A DNA stretch of 64,000 nucleotides, from contig DF236959.1 in NCBI GenBank assembly GCA_000708835.1, positions 357,728 through 421,727 of the forward strand. The letters run 5' to 3'. The stretch comes from Klebsormidium nitens. Lineage: Eukaryota; Plantae; Klebsormidiophyceae. The notes below the pieces were generated by a model. The model was not told the origin of the DNA, did no database searches, and worked only from the letters and a program-made list of their open reading frames with translations. Both the position numbers and the translations under genes were made by a program. Shown in pieces: positions 1,015-64,000 of the stretch; positions within the stretch are counted from its first letter, which is position 1; every line of letters begins with the position of its first letter.

Positions 1015-1957
1015 NNNNNNNNNNNNNNNNNNNNNNNNNNNNNNNNNNNNNNNNNNNNNNNNNNNNNNNNNNNNNNNNNNNNNNNNNNNNNNNNNNNNNN
1101 NNNNNNNNNNNNNNNNNNNNNNNNNNNNNNNNNNNNNNNNNNNNNNNNNNNNNNNNNNNNNNNNNNNNNNNNNNNNNNNNNNNNNNNNNNNNNNNNNNNN
1201 NNNNNNNNNNNNNNNNNNNNNNNNNNNNNNNNNNNNNNNNNNNNNNNNNNNNNNNNNNNNNNNNNNNNNNNNNNNNNNNNNNNNNNNNNNNNNNNNNNNN
1301 NNNNNNNNNNNNNNNNNNNNNNNNNNNNNNNNNNNNNNNNNNNNNNNNNNNNNNNNNNNNNNNNNNNNNNNNNNNNNNNNNNNNNNNNNNNNNNNNNNNN
1401 NNNNNNNNNNNNNNNNNNNNNNNNNNNNNNNNNNNNNNNNNNNNNNNNNNNNNNNNNNNNNNNNNNNNNNNNNNNNNNNNNNNNNNNNNNNNNNNNNNNN
1501 NNNNNNNNNNNNNNNNNNNNNNNNNNNNNNNNNNNNNNNNNNNNNNNNNNNNNNNNNNNNNNNNNNNNNNNNNNNNNNNNNNNNNNNNNNNNNNNNNNNN
1601 NNNNNNNNNNNNNNNNNNNNNNNNNNNNNNNNNNNNNNNNNNNNNNNNNNNNNNNNNNNNNNNNNNNNNNNNNNNNNNNNNNNNNNNNNNNNNNNNNNNN
1701 NNNNNNNNNNNNNNNNNNNNNNNNNNNNNNNNNNNNNNNNNNNNNNNNNNNNNNNNNNNNNNNNNNNNNNNNNNNNNNNNNNNNNNNNNNNNNNNNNNNN
1801 NNNNNNNNNNNNNNNNNNNNNNNNNNNNNNNNNNNNNNNNNNNNNNNNNNNNNNNNNNNNNNNNNNNNNNNNNNNNNNNNNNNNNNNNNNNNNNNNNNNN
1901 NNNNNNNNNNNNNNNNNNNNNNNNNNNNNNNNNNNNNNNNNNNNNNNNNNNNNNNNN
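1015..1957. other. Assembly gap (943 N)
   Basis: Continuous N run. The ORFs listed across it are artefacts. Confidence 0.99.
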
Positions 1958-2821
1958 CAATAGCCCGGGTCGTTATACAGAGCTTGAGCACAAGCCTGGC
2001 AGGTGCAGCAAATGCCATGCCAGGCGCACGCATGGCGCGCCCACGTGAAAGTCATGCGGCCGCCGCCGCCCCATGGGCTTCTCATCGAGCACTATATAGC
2101 TCCGAGAAACGATCGAGCTGCACCAGCCGGTGGGTTAGTAGCCGCATGTATGCACTGCATGAGCCGTCGGCTGGCATGTGAGTCCGGTCCGATCTAGCTA
2201 TCGCCGTTGAGTGCGCGCCGCGGCCATATAAGCCCGGCAGACTCAGTCTACTGTGAGTCATCACATAATATGGTCTCTTTTCGTTCTCGCTGGAGCCAAA
2301 TAGGCCATGTAGGCTTCTCACGGGATGCATGTATGATTGTGTGCCAGCCCATGGGCCCAATTTGCTAGCTGATTGTTCGTATCAGCATGAGTAGTTAGTA
2401 GGTTGAGCAAGAGTCGACAAGCCAACAATAAATTGCTGTCAGGCCAGTTGCACCAAGCTGGGTGCAATTGCATGGCAGCACACTTGAAACGTGGACGCAA
2501 TCGGAGCTCTGGAGCCGAAGCCGTCCCGAAGTCTGCTTTCCAGGCGGTCAAGTCGACTCCAGATTGCTCTCACAGTTTCAGCAATACAGAAGACCTTTTG
2601 CCTGCCAGAAAACCACCAACGAACGCCGCCGAATCATCCAGGGGGACGCGATAGTGAGCCAACGTTGAAAAAGCAGTCGGCAGTCGGGTTGCATGGCATC
2701 TAATGAAGCTTATCGGACTGGCACTTCCTGCTATCAGCGGGTGTGACTCTCAAGTGGAACTTCAGGGCAGAATCAAGACCCTAATCAGTGACGGAACTCT
2801 GGAACGAAAACGCGTGCTCTC

Positions 2822-48366: not shown

Positions 48367-50503
48367 ATGGCGCAGAGGCATGCATTGTCAAAGCTTCGGA
48401 AACCACCGTTGCTTACCTTCCTAACTCTCCTTCCTAAAAGCGCCATTTCCGTACGAGATCCTTTGCAAGCTTTAGCAGAACAATGTTATCAGTCCCTGGC
48501 ACGAAATGGCGAGGCGGCAGAAAAGCAAGTGTTGGCTCCAAGCAATTCTCATTCAGCCTCATGGCGGCCTTGGGCGGATTCGTCACACGGAGGTCAGTTG
48601 TTATTGATGGACTTTCAAAATATTCGTCAATCTGCTCATCAAAAGGTGTACTTGGGGTGCCGGAGAGATTACTGGGTTGCTCTACGAAATAGATTATAGG
48701 GTGGTGTAAAATGCAGAGTTTCTCAGAGTTGTGTGGCTGGTCTGCTAGCGACCTTGCTGATTCGGTTATTCTGCTTTTGCCCCTTTTTTGTCAGCAATTA
48801 CCACTTCTGTGATCGCCTGGAGTCTTTTCCCTCTGTAGTGCACATGGATGTGTTACCACTTCCGCCATGTGTGTCGGCTTCATTGAAACTGGGCACAAAC
48901 AAGTCACCAGTCAGCATTGTTGGTTGAAATCTTCATGCTTGAATTGGTATTTGGTGGTGATCTGCTCCGTCTTAGACCGTCCTGCGGTCTCAAGGACAAA
49001 TGCAGTACGCCAAAAAGAAGGCGAAGCAGAAGCTGAAACGTTTTCTTATCTCCTTTGACGACCTGCAGGTGATGTTGGGAGCTCATCGGGCATTGCCTGT
49101 GATGGGGGACTAGATTGGCGGCTTTCTGAAGAGCAGGTGGAGCGGATACGACTATTGCGGAGCTTGAGGGGGCTTTTAGGGGAAGCGACCTTTGAGAAGC
49201 TGCAATTTCCGGCGCCCCAGGCCCAGATCCCTTTGAAGGCAGACAGCGTCAAGCGGAAACGGGTAAGTCAATGATAAAACTTCACACAGATCAGTGTCTG
49301 CTGCAGTTGAGACCTTCTTTCAATCTTCCATTCTTGTTTCTTTCTTCAGACTAGTTAAGTGGCATTTGGATGCGTAACATATCAGCGTGGGGAGGACAGA
49401 TCAACGCAACACTTGATTCGAAATGGAGGCTATGACCCGTCCTTTGCATGCTTTCCTGGCGCTGGGGTTGACACTAAGCAAAGGGTTGATGTGTACAGTA
49501 AGGTTCCAACACAGAGCAGCCTTTATGTTTTGCTTATCCGTCAACGTCAAGGTGTCCACTCAACTCTACCTGTCTCTCAAGCCAACAACTCTTTCACCCA
49601 TTCAGTGCACTTCTAGCTGGGTTCAGTCAAATCAAATCGGAGTGCGGTCCCTTCTTTGGACCGGGCACCTTCCTGATCAAGCCGCAAGGGGTCCGACTGA
49701 CAAATTCTACGTATGGACAGATGCGTAGACACCAAAAGACTTGTCAGTGGAGACCCGTGAACTGCTGCAGCTGAAGTTTCGGCTCTGCATTTTCTGGTTC
49801 CATCGTCAAATCATTCAACGACAGCGGATGTTATACTGCCGCTGGCTTTTGGAATATCTTAGCTGACTGGTCAGCAGTTTGGGACCAGTGAATCTGCTGT
49901 CCAGAGGCGTACATAGGTGGACTGATGGGGCTGTGCGTGATCAGTGAGACCGCCATTTCAGTTGTCCAAAACCACTTCGGCTTGTACAAACTCAAATTGT
50001 GCGTCTGGGACAGTACTGCTGGTAATTGCACTAGATCTGGTGTACTTATCTTGAGCTTCTAATGTTTCTGGACTGAGATTGTCCATGTTGTCAGACCTCT
50101 TGGTCGGTTAAGCGGGTACTTGTCAGCCTAGCGAGACAAAGACACCGTCCACCCGCCAAACAACCGGCAATGTGGATGACCCAGAATCTTTTCAGCATTT
50201 TGTTCCCGTAATCGTGAAGACTTGACTAAAAGTCAAAGGAAGCCTCTGTGAAGAAATGACCCGACCATAAACGTGGATTGTAAACGTCGTGCCTGCGTAG
50301 GCGTCTGGTACTGCGCGCACTTTCGTCAGATGTGATCCAGTTTGGGGGACCATCCCCGATTTCTTGCTCGTCTGTATCCAATCATGTCTTCGTTTGCTAC
50401 CGTTAACGATGTTATTGCTTGTGTGCAGAGGAAAAAGATGAACAAGCATAAGCAACGGAAGTTGCGAAGACGGGAGCGTAACAAAGCTTCAGGCGGCAAG
50501 TAG
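48367..50503 (+). CDS. Mitochondrial small-subunit ribosomal protein mS38 (Cox24 C-terminal / DUF1713 family), 3 exons, 164 aa
   Basis: Exons 48367-48592, 49069-49262 and 50429-50503 sum to 495 nt. Splicing creates the hallmark DSVKRKR|RKKMNKHKQRKLRRRER, and the N-terminus resembles a basic presequence. The ORF track misses this gene. Confidence 0.85.
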
Positions 50504-52021
50504 AGTAAGTCTCCGATTGCAAAGGTTGAACGTGGAAAGCATACAGCTTGTTCACTCTGTAGATCCTCGTGCGACAGTAAGTCCTTGAACGGACTGTATC
50601 TGGCTGACTGTACGCTGGTCAGAAAAGCATGTTGTGAGCTTGTCTCAGCCCTATCGAAACGCAATGCCCTTCAAGCGCGACGACGCAGATTCAAGCGCAC
50701 TTGCAATGAGAAGATGTTGTTTGCATATACTTCATTCAGGTGTGTCAAGTGCTTCTAGTCAGGATGATTAGTTGGCACAGGCCGATCAATTTCTTGAGTA
50801 ACCTCATGCATCTTCTCCGGGTCCTTGGACAGTCACTCGATCAGCCAAACTGAGGGTAGTCGCAGCTCCGCTTCACGTCTGCAGCTGCAGTACTAAGCAC
50901 AATGTCAAGTTTTATATGAGCGGGTGACACGTCCTACATGCATGGGGACGTCCTCCACTATTGAATCTGAGAGGAAGGGACGAATAGTGGTGTCTGCTGA
51001 GCTCGCTAGGACTTACACGTGCTCACTGCTAGGGGGGGCGTCTCTGATTACGGCAATTCGCCCGGCAAGACACTATCACGACACACGCGTGAATGCCGCA
51101 GAATGCTCATGAGGTCATGCACGAGCATATCCCTCTCGTCGGGGGATTGAATTAAGTAAGTTCCGACCAACACATGCATGTCGCGGTTGCATATGTACAG
51201 CCAGATGAGCATAACCCTTAACGGCCAGTGTCCTTGCTGGTTGGAGTTTTGTCCTGTAAGCCTCAATCACGGACTCCCGCTAAGTTCGTACGTACGATAT
51301 TATGATCAAGAGTTGACAATCTGCGAACTAAGCAATTTGGAGTTGTCTCAGCATGCTGGGACACATGGTTGCGGTTGAATGGATTTGGCTCCACATGTTA
51401 AGTCAAGTTGTGACGGCGGCCGCCGCGGTTCTGACAAAACAAAACGATGGGAAATCCAATAATTTAAAGGCCAAGACCGATGCCACTCTGTTGGACAGCT
51501 GTAACAACGTGGCGAGGTCGTCCGAATCCAGGCAAAACCTCGATGATCGAACAATGTCTGGTTTGACTGTGCCAGTATGACCAAGGGTTCACGTGTTTGG
51601 ACCTCGCCACGAGTCCAACGTTCCTACAGCGTCTCAGCCCCGGTTCTAGAAAGAACCAAGGTTTCCCTCACCCAATCGTAGTTGCAAAGACCCAAGTACA
51701 GGAGGGGCCCATGGTTGAATTGATGCATTGAAGCTTGAGTCTCGTGATCGCCAGGCGACGCCGCCCCGTTTCCCTTCGCAACCTATGTCAGCTTGGCATT
51801 GAACCAAAAGTCTTACAACAGCTTACTGATGCTGAAGCAGAAGCACTAAACGCTTGGTACACAGTGCGTCTTTATCCGGTGCCTTCACAAACAACGCCCA
51901 AACGCCGTCCCAGATTATGTTACGTTTTATCGGACCAGACGATTGTCAAAGGCCCACGCACGTACAAACCTTACCGAACCCCATCTCTGCCGCATCTCTG
52001 ACAGCTGTCCAGCATACTTCA

Positions 52022-52052
52022 CTTGTCACATCATGTCGGTCTGCTTGCAGAA
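52022..52052 (+). promoter_or_regulatory. Conserved upstream block of the WW-membrane paralogues (copy 1)
   Basis: The reverse complement reads ...tctgcaagca...atgatgtgacaag. It matches plus-strand aggatgtgacaa upstream of copy 2 (57388-57400) and tctgcaagca...caggatgtgacaa upstream of copy 3 (about 62393-62421). Confidence 0.5.
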
Positions 52053-52184
52053 CCAAGACGGACGTGTCGACTCTGGCGAGCAAAAGGCTACGTGACCGCA
52101 ATTATACGCCATCTTAATTTGGACAGGACCGCCAGTGCGGGCGCTTCACTGTGGTTTCTCAGTCCGTCTGTAAGGGTGTGAAAA

Positions 52185-54051
52185 ATGGCGTCAAGCACAT
52201 CAGCAGCGCCAGGTTCCGGCCGTTGGCTGGCAGCATCGTGCTGCGTCCTGAACCTCCATTATGGCGCGTCTATGGGGAAGAGGAACGTCCGCCTTCTGCA
52301 TAAGAATAGTACGACTCTGCCTAAGGGGCCTTCAGATTTCCTTGGCAGAGAGCTTCAGCGCTTTCGAAATCTGGCACAGCCCACTACAAGCTTGGAATTA
52401 CATTTCACTAAGAGGCCCTGTCAAATGACCCGCCCTTCTTCTGCTCTCGCATCAAGCAAAATTCCACCCTGGAAGTGGCCATGTCACAGCAAAGGTTTAC
52501 ACCGGAAGCAGGTGTCACGTCTAAGCAGCTTAGACGCTCACCCGTTGAACAAGACAGTTTCGGCTTCGGGTGTGGTCAAGGGGGCGCCGCTCTGGAAGGG
52601 GTTGAGGAGGAATGCACTTGGATCAGCTCTTGGCCCTTCAGCAAGTATTATGTCAAACTCCAGGAGGCGCAGTCTGGGGAAGATAAGTGCCGCGGAAGCT
52701 ATCAAGGCAGGGAGTATCAAACGGCTGAGGAAACTTGAGATGGGGAAAGTGAAAGCAGGGGGAACGAGTTCCGGGGAAACGAGCCCCGGGGAAAGTAGGT
52801 CAGGGGAGCAGAACCCGGGGGGATCCCCCGAGCCGCCCCTGAGCCCCGACGTCTCGCTCAGACTTTCCGTGGGGACGGTGACCCTGGCTGCTTTTGCTCT
52901 CGGTTTGTTCGCCCTTTCGTGCTCCGTCCTCCCGCCTCTGAGGATTGCAAACTTGCCCCTTCTTGAGGCCATTCTTCTCCACATCCTGCTGTCGTCAAAC
53001 GCCATCTTCCTCGAGTGGACGGCTCTGCAATCATTCAAGAACGGAAGCGCTAGTATGACGGGCAGGCTGCGGACCCGGCACCCGGGGCTTCCTCCCGACA
53101 GGCACACCTTATCCGACCCCAGAGCAAACCGTGTTTGCTTCTACAACTCGGTCAGCAAAGTCGTTCAGTGGGAGCCCCCGCCCTCATTCCTACTTACTAC
53201 CCCGGAGGCTTCCCCCGGGCTGTTTGGAACCCTGACCCTGTTCTTCCAGCAACTTTGGGGGCTTCTGCAGCCAATCGTGACGGTCGGGCTGTACTTGAGC
53301 ACAGTCGTAACGGTCTACTGGTTCTCGCGCGGTCTCTATAGGGATCAACTAGGTGTGGGGACGACTTTGTCCCTCTTGGCAGCTTTCCTCGCGCTCCCAC
53401 AACCGCTGCCGTTCGTTGTCCTTGCGCTCAGTTCGCGGCCTTCCTTCCTGGGGGAAGTTGTTGCCGCCCAAGTTCGAGTCAGCCCTCTCCATTGCCCTCC
53501 TCATTAGAGTTCTCCCCGGGCTCTGCTCCACCCTCAAGACACTCCACCGGGCTGCGGAAGCGCGCCTGCCTAGTTGCCGTCTTCCCTGGAACTGCGCGTG
53601 TTTCTCGCGACTCTTAGTCGCTCTTTGCCCCACCCTGAGTTGGAGGCTCCACCCTTACGCCCTCAAGCTGGATTATGCTCGCGTGGCGCTTCTCCCGCTA
53701 CCCTATAGTGTTCCCCTCCCGGTGCCTGTGCCACGCTGGGAACTCTTGACGTCTTCCTGGAGAGCGCTCCTGTACGCCGCGCCGATGGTCCTCACCCTCG
53801 CGCGGCTGCTCGCGGCCGCGGCCGCGGCCAATCCTCAGGTTTATGCACCGAGCAAGCTTTACACCCTTGTGCTCTGTTCCAGGCCGGTGCAGATCAGTGC
53901 GTGCGTCTCGGCCGTCGCGTTTCTGCTCGGGCGACAGAGGGCGGCGTACGAGGTCGCTTTAGAGGAGAAAAAGAAGGAAGAAGAAGCGGAGGTCGACACC
54001 TTGGACAAGAAGCTACTCGAGAGTTTTGACAGGATGCTGGTTGATACGTAG
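52185..54051 (+). CDS. WW-domain multi-pass membrane protein, copy 1; one frameshift near 53450-53485 (621 aa if one base is removed)
   Basis: Overlapping ORFs 52185-53507 and 53353-54051 are colinear with copy 2. Features: presequence-like N-terminus, hydrophobic helices, degenerate WW at 53088-53181 (LPPDRHTLSDPRANRVCFYNSVSKVVQWEPP) and C-terminal LDKKLLESFDRML. No introns are evident. Confidence 0.7.
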
Positions 54052-55406
54052 ATTGCTTTGTGTGAAAGGATCTGGCGAGAAGAGATTAGCGAACGAGGCA
54101 GAATATCAAAGCACTGCCCAATCCAACCGAATTCCACGCTATTAATAAGTAGATGTACCTTATGCTGCCTTTGACTGGAACACTCTACTCAAGAATAAAT
54201 ATAGAAGAGCCTCAGAATATGTAAGTTTTTTGTCAGACCCATTGACATGGACGCTCTTAAAATAATCCCAGTCAAGTTTGAGCAGCCAAATCATGTACGG
54301 CTTAGCATGTACATATGATCACGATCATTGACGTCACTTGCGACGTACCGTTCAATGCGAACCGCGACCACGTGAGTTCAAACAACAATAGAGCTGAAGA
54401 CACTGAAAATAATTTGCTATTGGACGAGCAAAGCTTGGCGCCGGAGATTGCAGCGAGGATAGTAAATGAATAATTGAAGGCGGCAGAGAAAGGGATCTTT
54501 AGAAGGTGACTCGAGCGCCGATTGCAATGGTAGGTGCATAGCCGCTCTACTCCTGCTACACATTCTTAATAGCAAAAGGTCAAGCGTAAGATTCGTCACC
54601 AACTGGAGCGAGTGTTTTTATAGCACAATTCTGATAAGCTCCACGTTGCAACTAACCAGGACTAAGGCGTGTTTGGCCGATAAACTCGCTCTGCGTGCTT
54701 GTCTCTAGAAAGCTCGATGTGTAGTGACAAAAGCTGACTGTTCAGATCCGCTTCGAACCTGATTCGGATTCGTTTCGGGCGAGATTTCAAATGTGTTGGA
54801 CATGTCCGATTGTGTTCCGAAAGTGTCCAGATTGCAAAGAGAATTGTTCTGAACGGAGTCCGATTTCAATCCGTACCTGATAAGAATTCGGTCCGCAATC
54901 ACGCTTTCATGTCGTTGCACCAATCTGAGTCGTGTCCGAAGTGGATCTGAACCTGTCCGAATCAGATCCGAGTCGCACTTCAGTTCGGATCTGCTTCGGA
55001 CCTGGTTCAGACAAAGGCTTTCTTGCAGTGAAATTTAATTTTATATGGTCCGCAATGCAGATTGGATGGCTTCGTAGCACGTGCACAGAGGCTAGATGGT
55101 TGGTGATGCGTGCAATCATTCAGGAGCAGGCTACTGCAACGAGCATGGCAGACTCCCTTGGTCCTTTTCGTACATCTTAAGCAGAAGGATCAATTGTAAT
55201 GGGCACTCCCCTCTGCATTACGACCACTCAGTACTTCTTACGACACAGTAAGAAAATGATGAGGACTTCTACAATTTGAACTTCTAGTGCGAAAGTCTCA
55301 TCTTCCGAGAGTACTTCTCCGTTCCGGCTGGAATTAGCAGTGCCTTGATTGAAGCATCCGTTTCGAATCGGCGATTCCAGACTTTTCAGAATACGTAGAG
55401 CAGGTT

Positions 55407-57124
55407 CTAGAATAACGAATCGATTAGCATCCTGTCGAAGTCCTCAAGCAACTTTTTATCTAGGCTCTCAATCTCTGCTTCTTCTGTCTCCATCTTCTGC
55501 TCCAAAGCAGTCGCGCACGCCTCACCCTGTCTCACGAGCAGAAGCTCGACGACCGAAACGAACGCACTCATTTGCACCGGCCTGGAACAAAGCACCAGGG
55601 TGCAGTTTGTCCCCGCGGATAATCCCTGGGGTTTGGCCGCAGCCGCGGCCGCGAGCAGCCGCGCCAGGGGGAGGATCATCGGCGCCGCGTAAAGAAGCGC
55701 TCTCCAGGAGGATGTCAAGAGTTCCCACCGGGGCACCGGCACCGGGAGGGGAACTCTACAGGGAAGCGGGAGAAGCGCCACCCGATCAGAAGTCCAGTCC
55801 AGTGCGTATGGGTGTAACGTCCAGTTGAGAGCAGGGAAGAGAGCGATCAGGAGTGTTCTGGAGGACTCGCAGTCCCAACTAGGGAGGGGGCACTTGGGCA
55901 GGCCCTCTTTGGCCGCCCGGTGAAATACTCTGAAGGTGAGGCGCAGCCCGGGGAGAGCGCTAACTAGAAGCGCCACGCACAGAAGAGACTCCAACCGGGC
56001 GATCAGGGTCCCACTAAGACGCGCTGACCAGCGGGAGCGGCTAAGGAGCAAGATGAAGAACGGCAGCGGTTGGGGGAGGACAAAGAAAGCTGCGGAGAGA
56101 AAGAGGACCGTCCCCGCGCCTAGTTGCGATTTGCCCCCGAGAAGAGCGAAAGCGCACCACCGGAGCGTTACGAACTTGCTCCAGTACAGCCCGACCGTCA
56201 CGAGTGGCTGGAGAACTCCCCCGAGCTGCTGAAACAGGCCGTCAAAGATCAGGGTTAGAGTGACAACTAGACCGGGGGAAGCGCCCGAAGATCTGACGGT
56301 GAAGGCGGGGGATCCCATTGGACGGTTTGCGTGACCGAGTCATAGAAGTAAATCCGGTTCGTTTTGGGGTCGGAGAGCGCGTGCCAGTCGGGGGGAAGTC
56401 CCGGGCTCCGGACCAGCAGTCTGCCCACGTCAGCCGTATCTTCTTTGAATGCTTGCAGCGCCTTACGTACGAGGTTAAAAGCGTACGCTGCCAGCAAGAT
56501 GTGGAAAAAAGCTGCCTCGGCAAGGGGCAAACGTGACAGCTTCAGAGGCGGGAAACATGCGCACGAAAGGGCGGATAAGCCGACAGCGTACGTGGCTAGG
56601 GTCACGGTTTCCGAGCAAAGTAAGTTGAGCGAGACGTGGGGAAGGGGCGGTTCGGGGGATTCCTCCGGGCTCTGCCCTTCTGAGCTTGTTTCCCCGGAGC
56701 TCGTTTCCCCTGCTTGAGCTCTTTCCCTTTCAGCACAGTTCAGCCTCCCTCCTCCGTCGACTCCCCTGCCTCTTGATGTTACCGGGCGGTGTTTCTTCAG
56801 ATTGCATTTTCTTGCTCCAGCGTCAAGAGCTGATTCAATTGCACCTTTCCCCCAGCCCACCCATGGCAGCGCCCTTGTGACCACACCCGAAGCAAACAGA
56901 CTTTGCAACGGTCGAGTGTCTAAGCAGCTCAGACGCAACGGCTGCTTCCGGACGAGAGCTTTGACGCGTGGCCGCTTCCAGGGTGGACATATTATCGAAG
57001 GGAGAAACCCAAAAGGAGGAGTCGTTTGACAGGGCCTCCTATTGCACACTGTTCCCGGCATTCTGGGCAGTAGCGCCAGATGTCGGAGCTCGCTCCCCAG
57101 GAAACGTAAAGGTTCCGTCAGCAT
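55407..57124 (-). pseudogene. WW-domain membrane protein, copy 2; frameshift just after the WW domain
   Basis: ORFs 57124-56267 and 56318-55407. The WW domain at 56398-56306 is intact (LPPDWHALSDPKTNRIYFYDSVTQTVQWDPP). The codon matching the copy-1 ATG is ATA (57244-57242). Pseudogene status versus assembly error is unresolved. Confidence 0.6.
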
Positions 57125-58301
57125 CGCGCCACCTCCTTGTTGAAAGAACTTTCTGCTTTTCTGTCACTTGTACACCTTCAGGAACCTGAAGCAACCCAAG
57201 AATGGAGGTTCTTCTCTCAACGCATGTGTGATGCTTGACGCTATTTTCAAAATCTCTCAGGCTGCCACCGGACTTCAGACACCGCAGATAAGTTCAGCGC
57301 CCGCCGTTCCTGTCCAGCAGAAGCGCAGAATCTCTGGCGCGCGGCCTGCTTCCTTCCTTTTCGATCGAGGCTGCAGCCAAGACCCACAGGATGTGACAAA
57401 TCAAGACGTGACGTCAGAGATGACGACGGTGAAGTTCGTACCCTGAAGCGTTCGGCAGTCTTGTCAAGTATCACCCCTTTGCAAGCACCGCCACGCGAAC
57501 TCAGGTTATTTGGAAGCATCGATCTGGTTCAGATGCTCTGTACAGATGCTCATGTCTGCTAAGCATGCCAGTACGTGCTTTAGCTTCAGCACCGCGAATG
57601 TCAGACCTCGCGAATCACGGCAACGGAAGTGTTACAGCTCAGCGAGTTGGGCCGCTTAGAAACAAACCGACTGCAGTTTGTACTGATTCGGCCGCAAACT
57701 AAGGCGTTTACTCTGGCCATTGCAAGATGGGGTCATGAAGATCGACAATCGTAAGGGCCGACGTTATTGCAGCGGATGACGTGGCAAGGTACTGGTGTTG
57801 GCGCCGTCTTAATTCGGTCAGTCATGAACTGATCAAACAGTCCCCTCGTTTTTATCAAACCTCTCCGCCGTCAAGGTCCTTCCAACACAGTGCCCGCGGA
57901 CTCAAGCTGGATGTCGATGAATGTTGTGTTGACCCAGCTCTGTCCAAAGCGGCAGCTTCATCCCAGCTTCATTTACACGTCAGGTACTCAGGTACTATAG
58001 ACGTATATGCGGAACAGTTCTCCGGTCTCTTGCGGGTACACAACAGCAAAGACCAGATGTAGCCTAGGGCAACGAGTAACCATTTAAAGCGGAGCTACGT
58101 ACGGTCTTAACAAAGGAAACGTACAAGGTCCGAGCGTCTTCATATCGACGTTCCAGGACGTTCTATCTAGGTAGGGCAGGATCCAACAAGACGGTATTCT
58201 GACCGTTCCGGTTGATTCAATGGCTTTGCAGCGACCTTGACAGAGCTGGTTCGCGAGCCGATTGTTTTCTATTCTGCAGTGTCAGGTGTCACCTGAAGCA
58301 A

Positions 58302-58759
58302 GTCTTTCGTTTCCACCAGCATCCTGTCAAAGTCCGCAAGTAGCTTCTTGTCTGGTTCTCAACCGTCCGCTCCTTCTAGTACCTAGTTCCTTCTTCTCCT
58401 GCTCTAAGTACAAGCGTCCTCGTACGCCGCCCTCTCAGAGTCTGTCATCTATCGAACCCGACATTCGAGACGCACGCACTTTTCTGGCCGGTGTAGATTC
58501 AATGTGTCCAGAGACTCGGATAGCCCCGCCCGCCGGGGTTTGCCCACCGCGGCCGCGGCCGCGAGCAGCCGCGCCAAGCCATGGGAACCGTGACCGGGAC
58601 CAGGGCCGGGCGCGCTCTTCGGGAGGATTTCAAGAGTTCCTACCAGTGCACCGGCAGTGCCGGCACCGGGCACCGGGAGGGGAACGCTTAAAAGGGAAGC
58701 CGGAGAAGGGGCCACCCGGTCCAGAGCGCATGGAGTCCGGTACGTCGCGCGCGCCAGTT
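58302..58759 (-). pseudogene. Degenerate 3' fragment of a WW-membrane paralogue
   Basis: Homologous to the VALLPL..PLPVP..LARLLAAAAA..DKKLLADFDRMLVETKD region, with indels. Its 3' flank (about 58170-58300) aligns with the flank of copy 4 (about 63800-63910). Confidence 0.85.
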
Positions 58760-58999
58760 CGCTTTGGAGATCGTTGTGACGTCAAGTTCAAGTTGTTTCA
58801 TGATGAGCTCTCAGGACAAGCACTCCGAGTCCAAAAGAAAAAGCTCAGGAAAAGCTCAGGAAAAGCACTCACTCAAAAGGCTAGTACTGAGCAGTGAGGA
58901 CGGAGTGTGTAGACACTAGATAGAGAAAGGAAAAGAATAGCTTTGTCCAAAGTCCACTGTCCAGCCATTTCTTCTGCGCTTTCTGGCCTGTCAGACAGA

Positions 59000-59890
59000 A
59001 TGCAGGCAAAGCTAGAGTTAATGGAAAAGCGGACCAAGGAGCTTGAGCTTGCCTGCCCCATCTGCTATGAGCCGATTGTCAGGTATGGACCCAAGGGCTT
59101 TGGCAGGGCGGCCGTGGATGCCTCCCGCTTTGAGTGCCCTCGCTGTAAGCGGAGCTTCTGCGGAAAGCAGGGCTATGCTGACTTGACGGTATTAGAAGGC
59201 GCACAGGAGTATGCTGACTTCTTGCCGCTTGGGACGGAGCTGTTTAGACTTCCCTTAATAAGCTATGTCTATGAGCGAGGCTGGCGTCAAAACTTTGCCC
59301 AGTCAGGGTTCCCTGGGGTGGACCAGGAGTTTGCCTTGGCACAGCGGTACTTAGAAGCAGCAGCAGGCGGGGTGCTCCTGGACGTCAGCTGCGGCAGCGG
59401 CCTATTCACACGGCGGTTTGCAGCGAGCGGGAAGTATTCAGTGGTGGTGGGGTCAGACTTCTCAGAGAGCATGCTGGTGCAGACCAGGGACTTGATTAGT
59501 CAAGACAAGACGCTTGAGAGTTCAGCCAATATTGCGCTTGTCCGGGCAGACGTTGGGCGGCTGCCATTCCCGACAGGCTCCATCGACGGGGTGCATGCAG
59601 GCGCCGCCCTCCATTGCTGGCCTTTGCCGAGCACAGCAGTAGCAGAGATCAGCCGGGTTCTCAAGCCTGGAGGTGTCTTTGTGGCCAGTACTTTTCTAAG
59701 TCCAAGCCTACCTTTCTCTCGGGTCACCCAACGAAAGATCAGACAGGCACTTCATCGAGTCGGCATTCTGCCGGTTCAACTCCATTTGGAGCCCGAGTTG
59801 AGGGAGCTGCTGACAAAATGCGGCTTTGTTGACTACACACAAAGAACTAACAGGTTGTCTATATGGTTAGCGGCTAGCAAACCGAGGTAG
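59000..59890 (+). CDS. Intronless SAM-dependent methyltransferase with N-terminal Zn-ribbon (At2g41040-like), 296 aa
   Basis: Motifs: LACPIC...FECPRC, TELFRLPLISYVYERGWRQNF, LLDVSCGSGLF (motif I), DFSESML, RADVGRLPF and HAGAALHCWP. An in-frame TAG at 58910 leaves no transit peptide in this exon. Confidence 0.9.
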   Translation: MQAKLELMEKRTKELELACPICYEPIVRYGPKGFGRAAVDASRFECPRCKRSFCGKQGYADLTVLEGAQEYADFLPLGTELFRLPLISYVYERGWRQNFAQSGFPGVDQEFALAQRYLEAAAGGVLLDVSCGSGLFTRRFAASGKYSVVVGSDFSESMLVQTRDLISQDKTLESSANIALVRADVGRLPFPTGSIDGVHAGAALHCWPLPSTAVAEISRVLKPGGVFVASTFLSPSLPFSRVTQRKIRQALHRVGILPVQLHLEPELRELLTKCGFVDYTQRTNRLSIWLAASKPR

Positions 59891-60981
59891 TTAGCATGCA
59901 TAGGCTGTAAGTTCGTTCTTTATACGCGTTGCTGTGCGGGTAGCTGTTCATTCCTACATTTCCGATTCTGGGATCAAGGTTCAAAAATCAACGTTGAAGC
60001 TCGCGTATTGATTTCTTCTGATGAGCGCTGTTATGTGAGGTGAGAGTTCCCTCGGCTTGGTTTAGTTTATTGAGTCTTGAGTGCTTGCTGCTGGAGAAGT
60101 AGACCGTCGAGGGGCTCAAAGCATGTAGTAAGAGGAGTAGGTCCACAGAGTAGAAATCTGCGGTGCTTAGCCTGCACTATTGATGTATGTGCCATGACCC
60201 ATATGAACTGAAGATTGTTGCTACTTGCGTTCTCAACTCATTTAGATGCTGGAATCATCTAGCTGGCCCTTTTGTTTGCCCCAACCCGCTCATCCAAGCG
60301 GATTGATCCCTCTTCAAGTGCTGGTGTGCAATCCGCGTCTTGTTGCATATGCATCAAGATTGAATGCATGTTAGATACGAAACCTTTGAAAAATTGGCTT
60401 CATAACTAGGCGCCTCAGGCTCTGTCATCCGATCGAATGCTGAGGATGCACATCCATGCGTGTCACTATCCTTAACAAATTTAATTCAATATGTATATTT
60501 GCCCGGCAGCTCGCTATAGTAGCCTGTGCATACAGCGGAATGAACCTATGCACCTCACACCTGCGTTGACATGACCGATATGCATTAACAGCCGCGCACG
60601 CCTTTCGCAACCATAGCTGATCGAGCGCGGCGCGCCGGCACGTGGGCAATCTTGATACCGTTGAGTCAAAATCATAGAACCTCCGCGGGTTACAAAATGT
60701 TATGATGTACCGAGTTAATACATTAAATCTAATCGATCCATAAAGAGATCGGATATGAAGAAGAGATATAAAGCGCAATAAAACGTTCTTAGAAATATAA
60801 GGTAGACTTCCGAAGTTGTAGAAGTATACCATGCCAGTGATGTCGATCCAATTAAACGCGCGACATCGCGATCCACAATCATGATTAAATGGTTTGAATT
60901 GAACGGCCAGGATCATGCAGCATTCATGTGGACTCCTTCATGAAGCATACGGCCGGCAATCTTTTTTCTACATCTAATCTG

Positions 60982-62242
60982 CAGGGCGGCAAAGTGCCAG
61001 CGAGACACGCCGAGACATGGGAGGTGCTAAGGAGCAAGACGAAGAACAGCTAGAAAGATGGCAGCCGCTGGGGAAGAGCAACCTAAGAAAGCTGCGTAGA
61101 AGAAGAGGACCGTCGGGCCCGCGCCTAGTTGCGCCGGTACTTTGCCCCCAAGAAAAGCGCACGAGCACCACCGAACTGTTTACGAATCGGCTCCAGTATA
61201 GCGGGGCCGTCACGAGTACGTGGCTGGAAAACTCCCCTGAGCTGCTGAAGGAGGCCGTCAAAGTCAGGCTTAGACTGACAATAAGACCGGGGGAAGCACC
61301 CGGAAATCTGACGATGACCCGGGGAGTGAGGGCGGGGGAGCCCATTGGACGGTTTGGGTGACCGACTTATAGGAGCAGGCACGGTTCGTTTTGTGTCGGA
61401 AAGCGCGTGCCAGTCGGGGGGAGGCCTCGGGCTCCGGACCAGCAGTCTGCTAACCTCAGCCGTAGCTTCTTTGAATGCCCGCAGCGCCTCAGATCCGAAG
61501 CAAACGGCGCACGCAGACAGCACTCTGTGGAGGAAAACGGCATGAGCCAGGGTCCCAGGGGCAAGCGTGCAGGCCTCAGAGGCGGGAAGACTCTGCACGA
61601 AGGGGCAAATAAACCGACTTCTAGGGTCACGGTCTCTGGGGGAGTATGAACGAATAGTGGGGGAGGGGCTGCTCGGGGGATCCCCCCCGGGGTCTTCTGG
61701 ATTTAGATCCGGGCCTGGGCTTGTCTCCCCTGCTTTGACTTTCCCCTCTCAGTCGTTTGATACCCCCCTCCTCTAGTTTCTGCGGCCCTTATCTTTCCCC
61801 GGCTGAGCCCCCCCAAGGGCAGGTGTTCCCTTCCTGTAGCGCCAATACGTGATCCCGGTGCGTCTTTCTTAAAACTCATCGAGAGAGGTGCACCTGTGAC
61901 CATTGCCCCCGAAACCAACAAGTACGGTCGAGCGTGTAAGCAGCTTAGACGCGACGGCTGCTTCGGGAAGGAACTTTCGCTGTAATATTAATATGGCCAC
62001 TTCCAGGCTGGACGTCTTGCGGGGGAAGTAGGAAAAGGCCAAGTACAGGCCCTCTTTGTGTTCCTCGAGAGCAAGTTTTTGGGCAATGCGAAACCCTGAA
62101 GCTCTGTCCCCAGGAGATGAAAGTGTCCCGTGCCACTCCTTTGACGAAAGGAACTCCCTCTGCTTTGACAGAGACCTGCACCCTCAGAAATTAGATTCCG
62201 CAATAAAGCTGTCTTAGTCCTAAACGCTGGCGCTGCTGACAT
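60982..62242 (-). pseudogene. WW-membrane paralogue, copy 3 (5' two-thirds), multiply disrupted
   Basis: The ATG at 62242 (MSAAP) aligns with the copy-1 start region. There is a premature TAA at 61990-61988 after AWKWPY, a 1-nt deletion inside the WW domain and further shifts. Homology stops near 60982. Confidence 0.85.
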
Positions 62243-62684
62243 GCCTGACGTCACGCCACTCTTCCAGATGAATCCATACAAGCGTCGGAAAAAGATCCTA
62301 ATGAAGCGCCCGCACTCCGAGTCCTTTCCAGCAGTGGCGCGCAAGTACTGGCGCGGTTGCGTAGCCTTCTCTTCTACAACAATCTTACGTCTTCTGCAAG
62401 CAAGCCAGCAGGATGTGACAATCGAGGAAAGATGACGTCAGCAACGACGCACGGTGACGGTCCTTATCTTGGCGGTCTTCTTATATGAAACTCAGCTTCA
62501 CTTGCGAATCTTTATTCTGCAACCGCACTGCTTGTGAAGGCGTCCGGTCAGGATGTAGCCTCTTCTGAGCGCGTTAACGCTCTGAATCAGCATCGTTGGG
62601 CTTGTCAGACCTAACGGTTCTCTGCCAAAACAATGCAGAACAGCTCAGGGCTAGCAAGAGGGATCCTTCCTGAAGGGCAAACGG

Positions 62685-62727
62685 ATTACTTGCAGCCATT
62701 GCTAGCGTCAGATTGGCTGCAAGTAAT
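62685..62727. repeat. Perfect 14-bp inverted repeat with a 15-nt spacer
   Basis: attacttgcagcca ... tggctgcaagtaat. Confidence 0.85.
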
Positions 62728-63906
62728 AAAGATTCTTCTGCTCAAACGTACGAAGTGAAGGATCGCGGATACTGCCCATACGCACTTGCATCAGCTGCCT
62801 GCTCATATTACCTGGCACGACCAGTCATCTAGCCTGTTTACTGTAAACTTATCTTCTTTCTGGATCTTACAACCTCCATACAAGCGCAGTGACTTCGCTT
62901 CATGCACCTGGGTAAGCAGGCGCGCAGCGAGAAGAGCAGCGTCTATCCAAGTAGAGTCAAATCTTGCAATCGAGTGACCACTTGAAGTCTTCACCTGTCG
63001 CCTCGTCTTACATGTAATCCAGACTTACAATCTCTGGCCCCTGATCTCGCACGTCCACTGGTTCTCGTTTGCAATGCCATGGACTCGGTCATTCTATCAC
63101 AAGATCTCGACGTCATTAAGATAATTCTCGATTACCTTTTGACAGCGCAGGAGACGGGTTAAGTCAAGGTCACAGACAAGGGTTGCAGCGTGCATTCAGG
63201 TTGAGTCCAGCCACGCAGTACTGCTCCTTCTTTCCCGGCTTTGTCGGAAGCTGCGTCACTTCGAACCATACAGTCGACTTTTCGTGTCCATCAAGCCTCT
63301 TTGAATGAGATGATCAGGCAATGGAAATGTGTCATTCGCTATTGCAAAGCCGATTGTAACGGTGCTTTTCAACGAAGTGTCTCTGTTGCGCCCGAAACTA
63401 GCATGCTCAACACGTACAGTTTTGCATTTTCAGAGACGACAATCGGAAGACTGCGCTTCCGTTACGCAGGAACGGATCATTCAAGCCTGTCGAGGTAATT
63501 GAAGCGCCCGCCTTCGACGTGCCAAGACTCGATATTTACTCCAGCGTCCTCAGTCCTAACGGCCTTCGAGGTCGTGAAGACGCTTTCAAAATCAGAGACA
63601 TCGAGATGAGAATTTCTCGTATTTGTGGTTTGACCCACTGTTCACAACGATGTGGGAGTCAGGAAGACCTCACGCCATTCGTACTAGCGTCCACTTTTGA
63701 TCAATTAAGGAGTTACGTCCATTCTCATGACTCGAACGTACAGAATGTAAGCCCGCCACATGCCTGATTGTAATTTCACTTGTCCAGAAGTCTTACTCTC
63801 GTTAGGGATCCGGCAAGGAACTCGACCGTTCTAGTTGGATTAGCAACTTCTTGACAGAGCCCATCGTCTTCTATTCTGTACTGTCAGATGTATCTACCTA
63901 AAGCAG

Positions 63907-64000
63907 TTAGTCTTTCACTTCCACCAGCATCCTGTCAAAGTCTGCAAGCAGCTTCTTGTCTAGGTTCTCAACCTCCGCCCCTTCTAGCTCCTTCTTCTTC
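63907..64000 (-). CDS. WW-membrane paralogue, copy 4 (C-terminus only; runs off the window)
   Basis: KKKELEGAEVENLDKKLLADFDRMLVEVKD*, homologous to the C-termini of copies 1 and 2. Confidence 0.8.
   Translation of the reverse strand, partial: KKKELEGAEVENLDKKLLADFDRMLVEVKD

Follow-up and report, generated by a model that had tools for sequence, protein, structure and literature searches.

In a 64,000-nucleotide stretch of the Klebsormidium nitens scaffold DF236959.1 (assembly GCA_000708835.1), hereafter the window, positions 52185 to 64000 contain four paralogues of one gene family. The segments of these copies are 70-91% identical to one another, as determined by DNA alignment and repeat finding, and the translations of their open reading frames (ORFs) share a hydrophobic hairpin, a WW domain, a PLPVPVPRWELLTSSWRALLY motif and an acidic tail of the form LDKKLLxxFDRML. 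The locus is best explained, with a probability of about 0.65, as a tandem array of a Klebsormidium-restricted orphan family under gene birth and death, whose products would be membrane proteins with a WW docking site. On sequence evidence, copies 1 and 2 were disabled recently, copy 3 is a relic of older date, and within the window only copy 4 is likely to yield a full protein.

Copy 1 (subtype I, KFL_000100570) occupies 52185..54051 of the forward strand. Its 1867 nucleotides are not divisible by three, and a one-nucleotide insertion splits the coding sequence into pieces at 52185-53471 (429 codons) and 53473-54048 (192 codons). The extra base falls in GCCCAAGTTC (53470..53472), for which the relatives read C-GGT in a three-way DNA alignment. 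Hydropathy and the structure model described below place its hairpin at 52878..53018 (helices 52878-52931 and 52959-53018), followed by a degenerate WW (LPPDRH...QWEPP) at 53088..53180 and by the end of the conserved C-terminal domain (C-domain) at 53713..54039, which runs from PLPVPVPRWELLTSSWRALLY (53713-53775) to the acidic tail LDKKLLESFDRML (54001-54039). The annotated protein P0001 is 99% identical to this copy. Copy 2 (subtype II, KFL_000100580), on the reverse strand at 55407..57124, matches the annotated protein P0004; its 1718 nucleotides are also not a multiple of three and consist of pieces in different frames (57124-56303 and 56303-55410), with an intact WW at 56306..56398. Copy 3, again on the reverse strand and carrying no gene annotation, comprises an N-terminal part reaching from the start to just past the WW (60982..62242) and a degraded yet recognisable C-terminal part (58302..58759; LARLLAAAAA..., ...DFDRML). 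Of copy 4 (subtype III, reverse strand), the window holds the last 30 codons and the stop (94 bases, 63907..64000), the rest lying beyond it. The whole gene was retrieved from locus L001, which is identical to the reverse complement of window positions 53907-64000, and is a single intact 573-residue ORF with no intron (L001:10246-11967). The initial annotation, which had placed four paralogues with these shared parts at these positions, is borne out on both points; the four are paralogues and not four working genes, with copies 1-3 frame-broken and copy 4 alone intact. It had recognised the frame break of copy 1 and overlooked that of copy 2.

Frame-breaking lesions were called against intact relatives or orthologues in DNA alignments, and broken copies entered the searches and alignments as separate pieces, joined in scripts only by NNN at the breaks. 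The single-base insertion of copy 1 (~53472) was called against copy 6 and L002-A, its orthologue on a related contig, L002, derived from the Sequence Read Archive (SRA). In copy 2, a 10-nucleotide deletion just past the WW (~56303), called against the orthologue L002-B, accounts for the switch of frame at that point. The N-terminal part of copy 3 contains at least four frame breaks, including a one-nucleotide deletion within the WW, and copy 5, just past the window edge, contains two (deletions of 11 and 1 nucleotides). Copy 6 (KFL_001120250) is broken inside its WW by 95 additional nucleotides, made up of a 90-nucleotide perfect palindrome and a 5-bp target duplication, while L002-A, L002-B and L002-C have lost 64, 10 and 2 nucleotides, respectively. 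The lesions of copies 1, 2, 5 and 6 and of the three L002 copies are heterogeneous and differ copy by copy; in subtypes I and II both orthologues are broken, at different sites, in the two algae. Across the family, the frames downstream of the breaks are still open for 192-350 codons.

A second K. nitens cluster (L006:2323-11945, scaffold DF237602.1) holds four divergent family members, two of which are frame-broken and only one of which, d4, is intact (553 residues); the third member has an intron-like interruption of ~190 nucleotides before ALPQPLP. Intact single ORFs in the family are those of copy 4, d4, the gene of locus L007, P0012 and P0017. The palindrome of copy 6 (L003:10538-10627, TGTTGGAGATAAG...CTTATCTCCAACA, flanked by an AAAAC duplication) resembles a foldback element or one of the miniature inverted-repeat transposable element type, and no copy of it was found in the window.

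The copies fall into three subtypes, I (copies 1, 6 and L002-A), II (copies 2, 3 and L002-B) and III (copies 4, 5 and L002-C), whose order is shared by K. nitens and L002. Synonymous divergence (dS) between orthologues is 0.46-0.58, indicating that L002 comes from a different species. The ratio of non-synonymous to synonymous rates (dN/dS) is 0.23-0.36 in the C-domain versus 0.46-0.84 in the N-terminus, and purifying selection is shown, at the level of these codon comparisons, to act on the C-domain. In a branch test, twice-broken copy 5 has accumulated 18 non-synonymous to 29 synonymous changes, versus 30 to 25 in intact copy 4. N-terminal and C-terminal trees disagree, the former grouping subtypes I and II apart from III and the latter I and III apart from II, which shows old recombination between paralogues and points to a mosaic origin. 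Recent gene conversion within species was considered as a cause of the low dN/dS and rejected; in the tree of the C-terminal part, subtypes I and III form a star with no grouping by species, so that support is confined to recombination of an older date. The broken copies are most simply read as the outcome of recent parallel decay.

The WW of this family is a canonical member of PF00397. It forms a 31-residue module (LPPDWH...YFYNS.T...QW.PP), and copies 2 and 4 and most relatives have the two signature tryptophans some 22 residues apart, followed by a proline. Scores of 42.4 bits for copy 2 (E 7e-11), 40.9 for copy 4 and 42.2 and 37.8 for the L002 copies all exceed the Pfam gathering cut-off of 26.9 bits, whereas copy 1, at 17.3 bits, falls below it because its first tryptophan is replaced by arginine (LPPDRH), in line with the initial description of the domain as intact in copy 2 and altered in copy 1. 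The best sequence matches obtained with phmmer are ITCH (E 1.5e-9), NEDD4L, WWP1, SETD2 and Pin1. The modelled domain, a sheet of three antiparallel strands (89-94, 99-104 and a short one at about 110-111), superposes on Pin1 and NEDD4 WW structures with a root mean square deviation of 0.7-1.3 Å over 30-35 residues. The segment that had been called WW-like thus matches both the profile and the fold.

All members except the relic KFL_011450020 and short fragments show the same order of parts: a variable, basic, Ser/Thr-rich N-terminus, the hairpin, the WW, the C-domain and the acidic tail. The N-terminal ~170 residues of copy 4 are basic, Ser/Thr-rich and fast-evolving, and by composition the first 60 residues of the proteins contain 6-11 Lys/Arg, 2-3 Asp/Glu and 6-13 Ser/Thr, which is compatible with a putative transit peptide or organelle targeting. 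Hydrophobicity is pronounced in the pair of helices preceding the WW, with family-average hydropathy peaks of 2.28 and 2.06. Copy 4 residues 160-573 were modelled with AlphaFold2 from an alignment of 32 diverse rows (predicted local distance difference test score, pLDDT, 86.7; predicted template modelling score 0.65); an earlier model built from 16 close copies was discarded (pLDDT 40.5). The model shows two long hairpin helices, the three-stranded WW, a low-confidence linker and a C-domain of ~300 residues with about six long helices and a beta-hairpin formed by the invariant LLPLP..VP..PVPRWE stretch, ending in a helix of ~57 residues that runs into the acidic tail. The C-domain helices are predicted to be long, moderately hydrophobic and proline-kinked, and the C-terminal helix to be acidic and soluble. 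Of the 24 residues that are invariant in the C-domain, ten are prolines and most are Pro, Ala or Leu; invariant polar residues are few (two Arg, with near-invariant Glu, Gln, Tyr and Cys). As this set is not catalytic in appearance, the protein is taken to be an adaptor or scaffold and not an enzyme.

Lysines and arginines number 28 in the N-terminal region, none in the short hairpin loop and 8 in the WW loop, a distribution that would put the WW and the N-terminus on the same side of the membrane. The proline-rich segments LPQPLP and VPLPVPVPRWE, previously suggested as intramolecular ligands of the WW, lie in confidently folded helices and the beta-hairpin of the model, and they therefore look structural and not free for WW binding. 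A better candidate ligand is a juxtamembrane PP motif (EPPLP or PPSxWGP) just ahead of the first helix in most members; subtype III, including copy 4, does not have it.

The C-domain has no detectable relative outside the family. Comparison with Pfam gave nothing below E 0.17, and comparison with PDB sequences gave no match at E<=10. Foldseek searches of PDB and BFVD, in which the C-domain was searched within the larger model and not alone, found no match to it at E<=1e-3. ESM Atlas TM-scores were at most 0.27 and driven by the WW, with no C-domain match, and an ESM Atlas feature search with the C-terminal piece of copy 2 and with copy 4 residues 275-573 yielded no usable match; VIA searches matched a generic helical hairpin only (Z ~8). 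When 1.84 billion representative proteins were searched with a profile of the post-WW domain, no more than 24 clusters were recovered at E<=1e-3, every named one being from K. nitens and the others from SRA or metagenome contigs. These results agree with the initial proposal of a locally expanded family without a described counterpart. Word-based and profile searches identified further K. nitens members (KFL_001120250, KFL_002450160, the cluster KFL_006530030-050 and the relic KFL_011450020); the family genes sit on at least five scaffolds, and members elsewhere are proteins from SRA run SRR23617307 and JGI metagenomes, at 32-77% identity. An ORF neighbouring the family in L004 (10921-12672) was rejected as a member at 19% identity. 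As far as databases show, this would be an orphan family confined to Klebsormidium and close environmental relatives.

Family genes, KFL_000100610 among them, have already been deposited under the automatic names "WW domain-containing protein", "Transmembrane protein" or "Uncharacterized protein". The models of KFL_000100570 and KFL_000100580 span the frame breaks with introns, and these "introns" cut conserved parts, namely the WW in P0004 and ~80 C-domain residues in P0001. The public model of copy 4 has 477 residues versus the 573 of the single ORF. In all three models (window 52185-57124, L001:10001-11967), introns or alternative first exons drop conserved segments, and they look like work-arounds of the predictor for frame breaks. 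No paper was found on the KFL gene identifiers, on the SRA run, or on WW domains together with Klebsormidium membrane proteins; the genes themselves are known as hypothetical proteins, and their family, function and pseudogene status are so far undescribed.

Three observations weigh against a decaying array of membrane protein genes. Five segments of the C-domain are only moderately hydrophobic (peaks 1.45-2.04); the pieces downstream of the breaks in copies 1 and 2 (192 and 298 codons) have no stops and a low dN/dS, so that the breaks must have arisen very recently or else be tolerated; and the K. nitens assembly is gapped, so that the break in copy 1 may be a one-nucleotide error. The second of these also speaks for copies 1 and 2 being working genes whose breaks are assembly errors or spliced introns, as do the single lesion in each copy, the draft state of an assembly whose scaffold has an N gap, and the annotated models that do span the breaks. 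This explanation is nonetheless rather unlikely. A 10-nucleotide deletion is not a homopolymer miscall, the independent contig L002 has comparable lesions at other sites, and the palindrome with its target duplication breaks copy 6; lesions that are not of the type made by assemblers and that are present in two independent data sets are considered real. Also, the annotated introns would remove the WW or part of the C-domain, and copy 1 additionally lacks the first WW tryptophan. An exact-pattern scan of metagenome contigs provided no independent sequence spanning the copy 1 break, scanning that collection for the family did not produce any confirmed locus, and the ORF pieces of the window were not found in any other assembly by exact look-up.

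Broken copies could alternatively still be used, either as separate modules (the hairpin with the WW, and the C-domain alone) or as donors for recombination. Six of ten independent lesions lie no more than ~45 residues from the middle of the WW, a region making up 16% of the length (binomial ~2e-3, post hoc), the downstream C-domain pieces are open and constrained, non-synonymous changes are fewer in copy 5 than in the intact copy 4, and the conflicting trees record past recombination between paralogues. However, internal initiation is inefficient on eukaryotic mRNA, the clustering test was devised after the fact and the C runs around the WW may simply mutate more, and copy 3 shows that broken copies go on decaying, which together make continued use improbable. 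An origin of these genes as cargo carried by a transposable element or integrated virus, and not as host genes, would fit intronless, multicopy genes spread over several scaffolds. Yet the subtype order is kept between K. nitens and L002, the only repeats of the region are the paralogues themselves, no terminal repeats surround the units, the neighbours are intron-bearing host genes and viral structure models gave no match, so that a mobile origin is considered extremely improbable. Gene birth and death in a tandem array of host genes is the preferred explanation.

If the array encodes polytopic membrane proteins, as we infer from the hydrophobic hairpin and C-domain, the WW would lie in a loop returning to the N-terminal side and be held at the membrane face. 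It may there dock a proline-rich partner, or the juxtamembrane PP motif of the same protein, onto the membrane domain, and the protein would act as a membrane-anchored adaptor or scaffold rather than as an enzyme. The module resembles those of the NEDD4-family ligases (ITCH, NEDD4L and WWP1) and of Pin1, in that it scores above the Pfam cut-off, aligns with them and is predicted to superpose at about 1 Å, and its first loop is as long as that of Pin1. In contrast to these soluble proteins, the K. nitens family has the WW between hydrophobic helices, and the His of the usual "NH" motif, which matters for PPxY binding in WW domains, is replaced by Ser, so that the sequence does not reveal the class of ligand. 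NDFIP1 and NDFIP2 are PPxY-bearing membrane adaptors that recruit soluble WW ligases. They offer a possible analogy, in which contact between a WW and a proline motif is tied to a multi-pass membrane protein; the polarity is reversed, as the membrane protein would bear the WW in K. nitens, and there is no relation in sequence or fold.

The window also contains, between the two parts of copy 3 and on the opposite strand, a 315-residue ORF for an S-adenosylmethionine-dependent methyltransferase that is not a family member (58943..59890, forward strand; Methyltransf_11, E 5.5e-21). A public methyltransferase model of 349 residues corresponds to window 59000-61361 and overlaps the copy 3 relic antisense. 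Otherwise the cluster is surrounded by host genes of the ordinary kind, with introns (PHD/LRR, acyltransferase and metallophosphatase). A run of about 950 N at window 1015-1967 marks a scaffold gap and explains the low G+C content of the first 2 kb. No Rfam match was obtained for window 50000-64000.

WW domains are familiar as parts of soluble proteins, and a WW built into the loop of a multi-pass membrane protein, together with a 300-residue domain without detectable relatives, would be an undescribed architecture. A more specific and doubtful proposal is that the N-terminus, basic and rich in Ser/Thr, serves as a genuine transit peptide of a plastid (or mitochondrial) membrane protein, with the WW facing the stroma or the intermembrane space. 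If so, the Klebsormidium lineage would have invented the first WW docking system to work within an organelle. Klebsormidium is widely used for studying plant adaptation to land, and the cluster provides a clear view of gene birth and death, with three subtypes common to two algae and most copies apparently disabled independently and recently, their downstream frames still open and constrained, a history that the public gene models hide.

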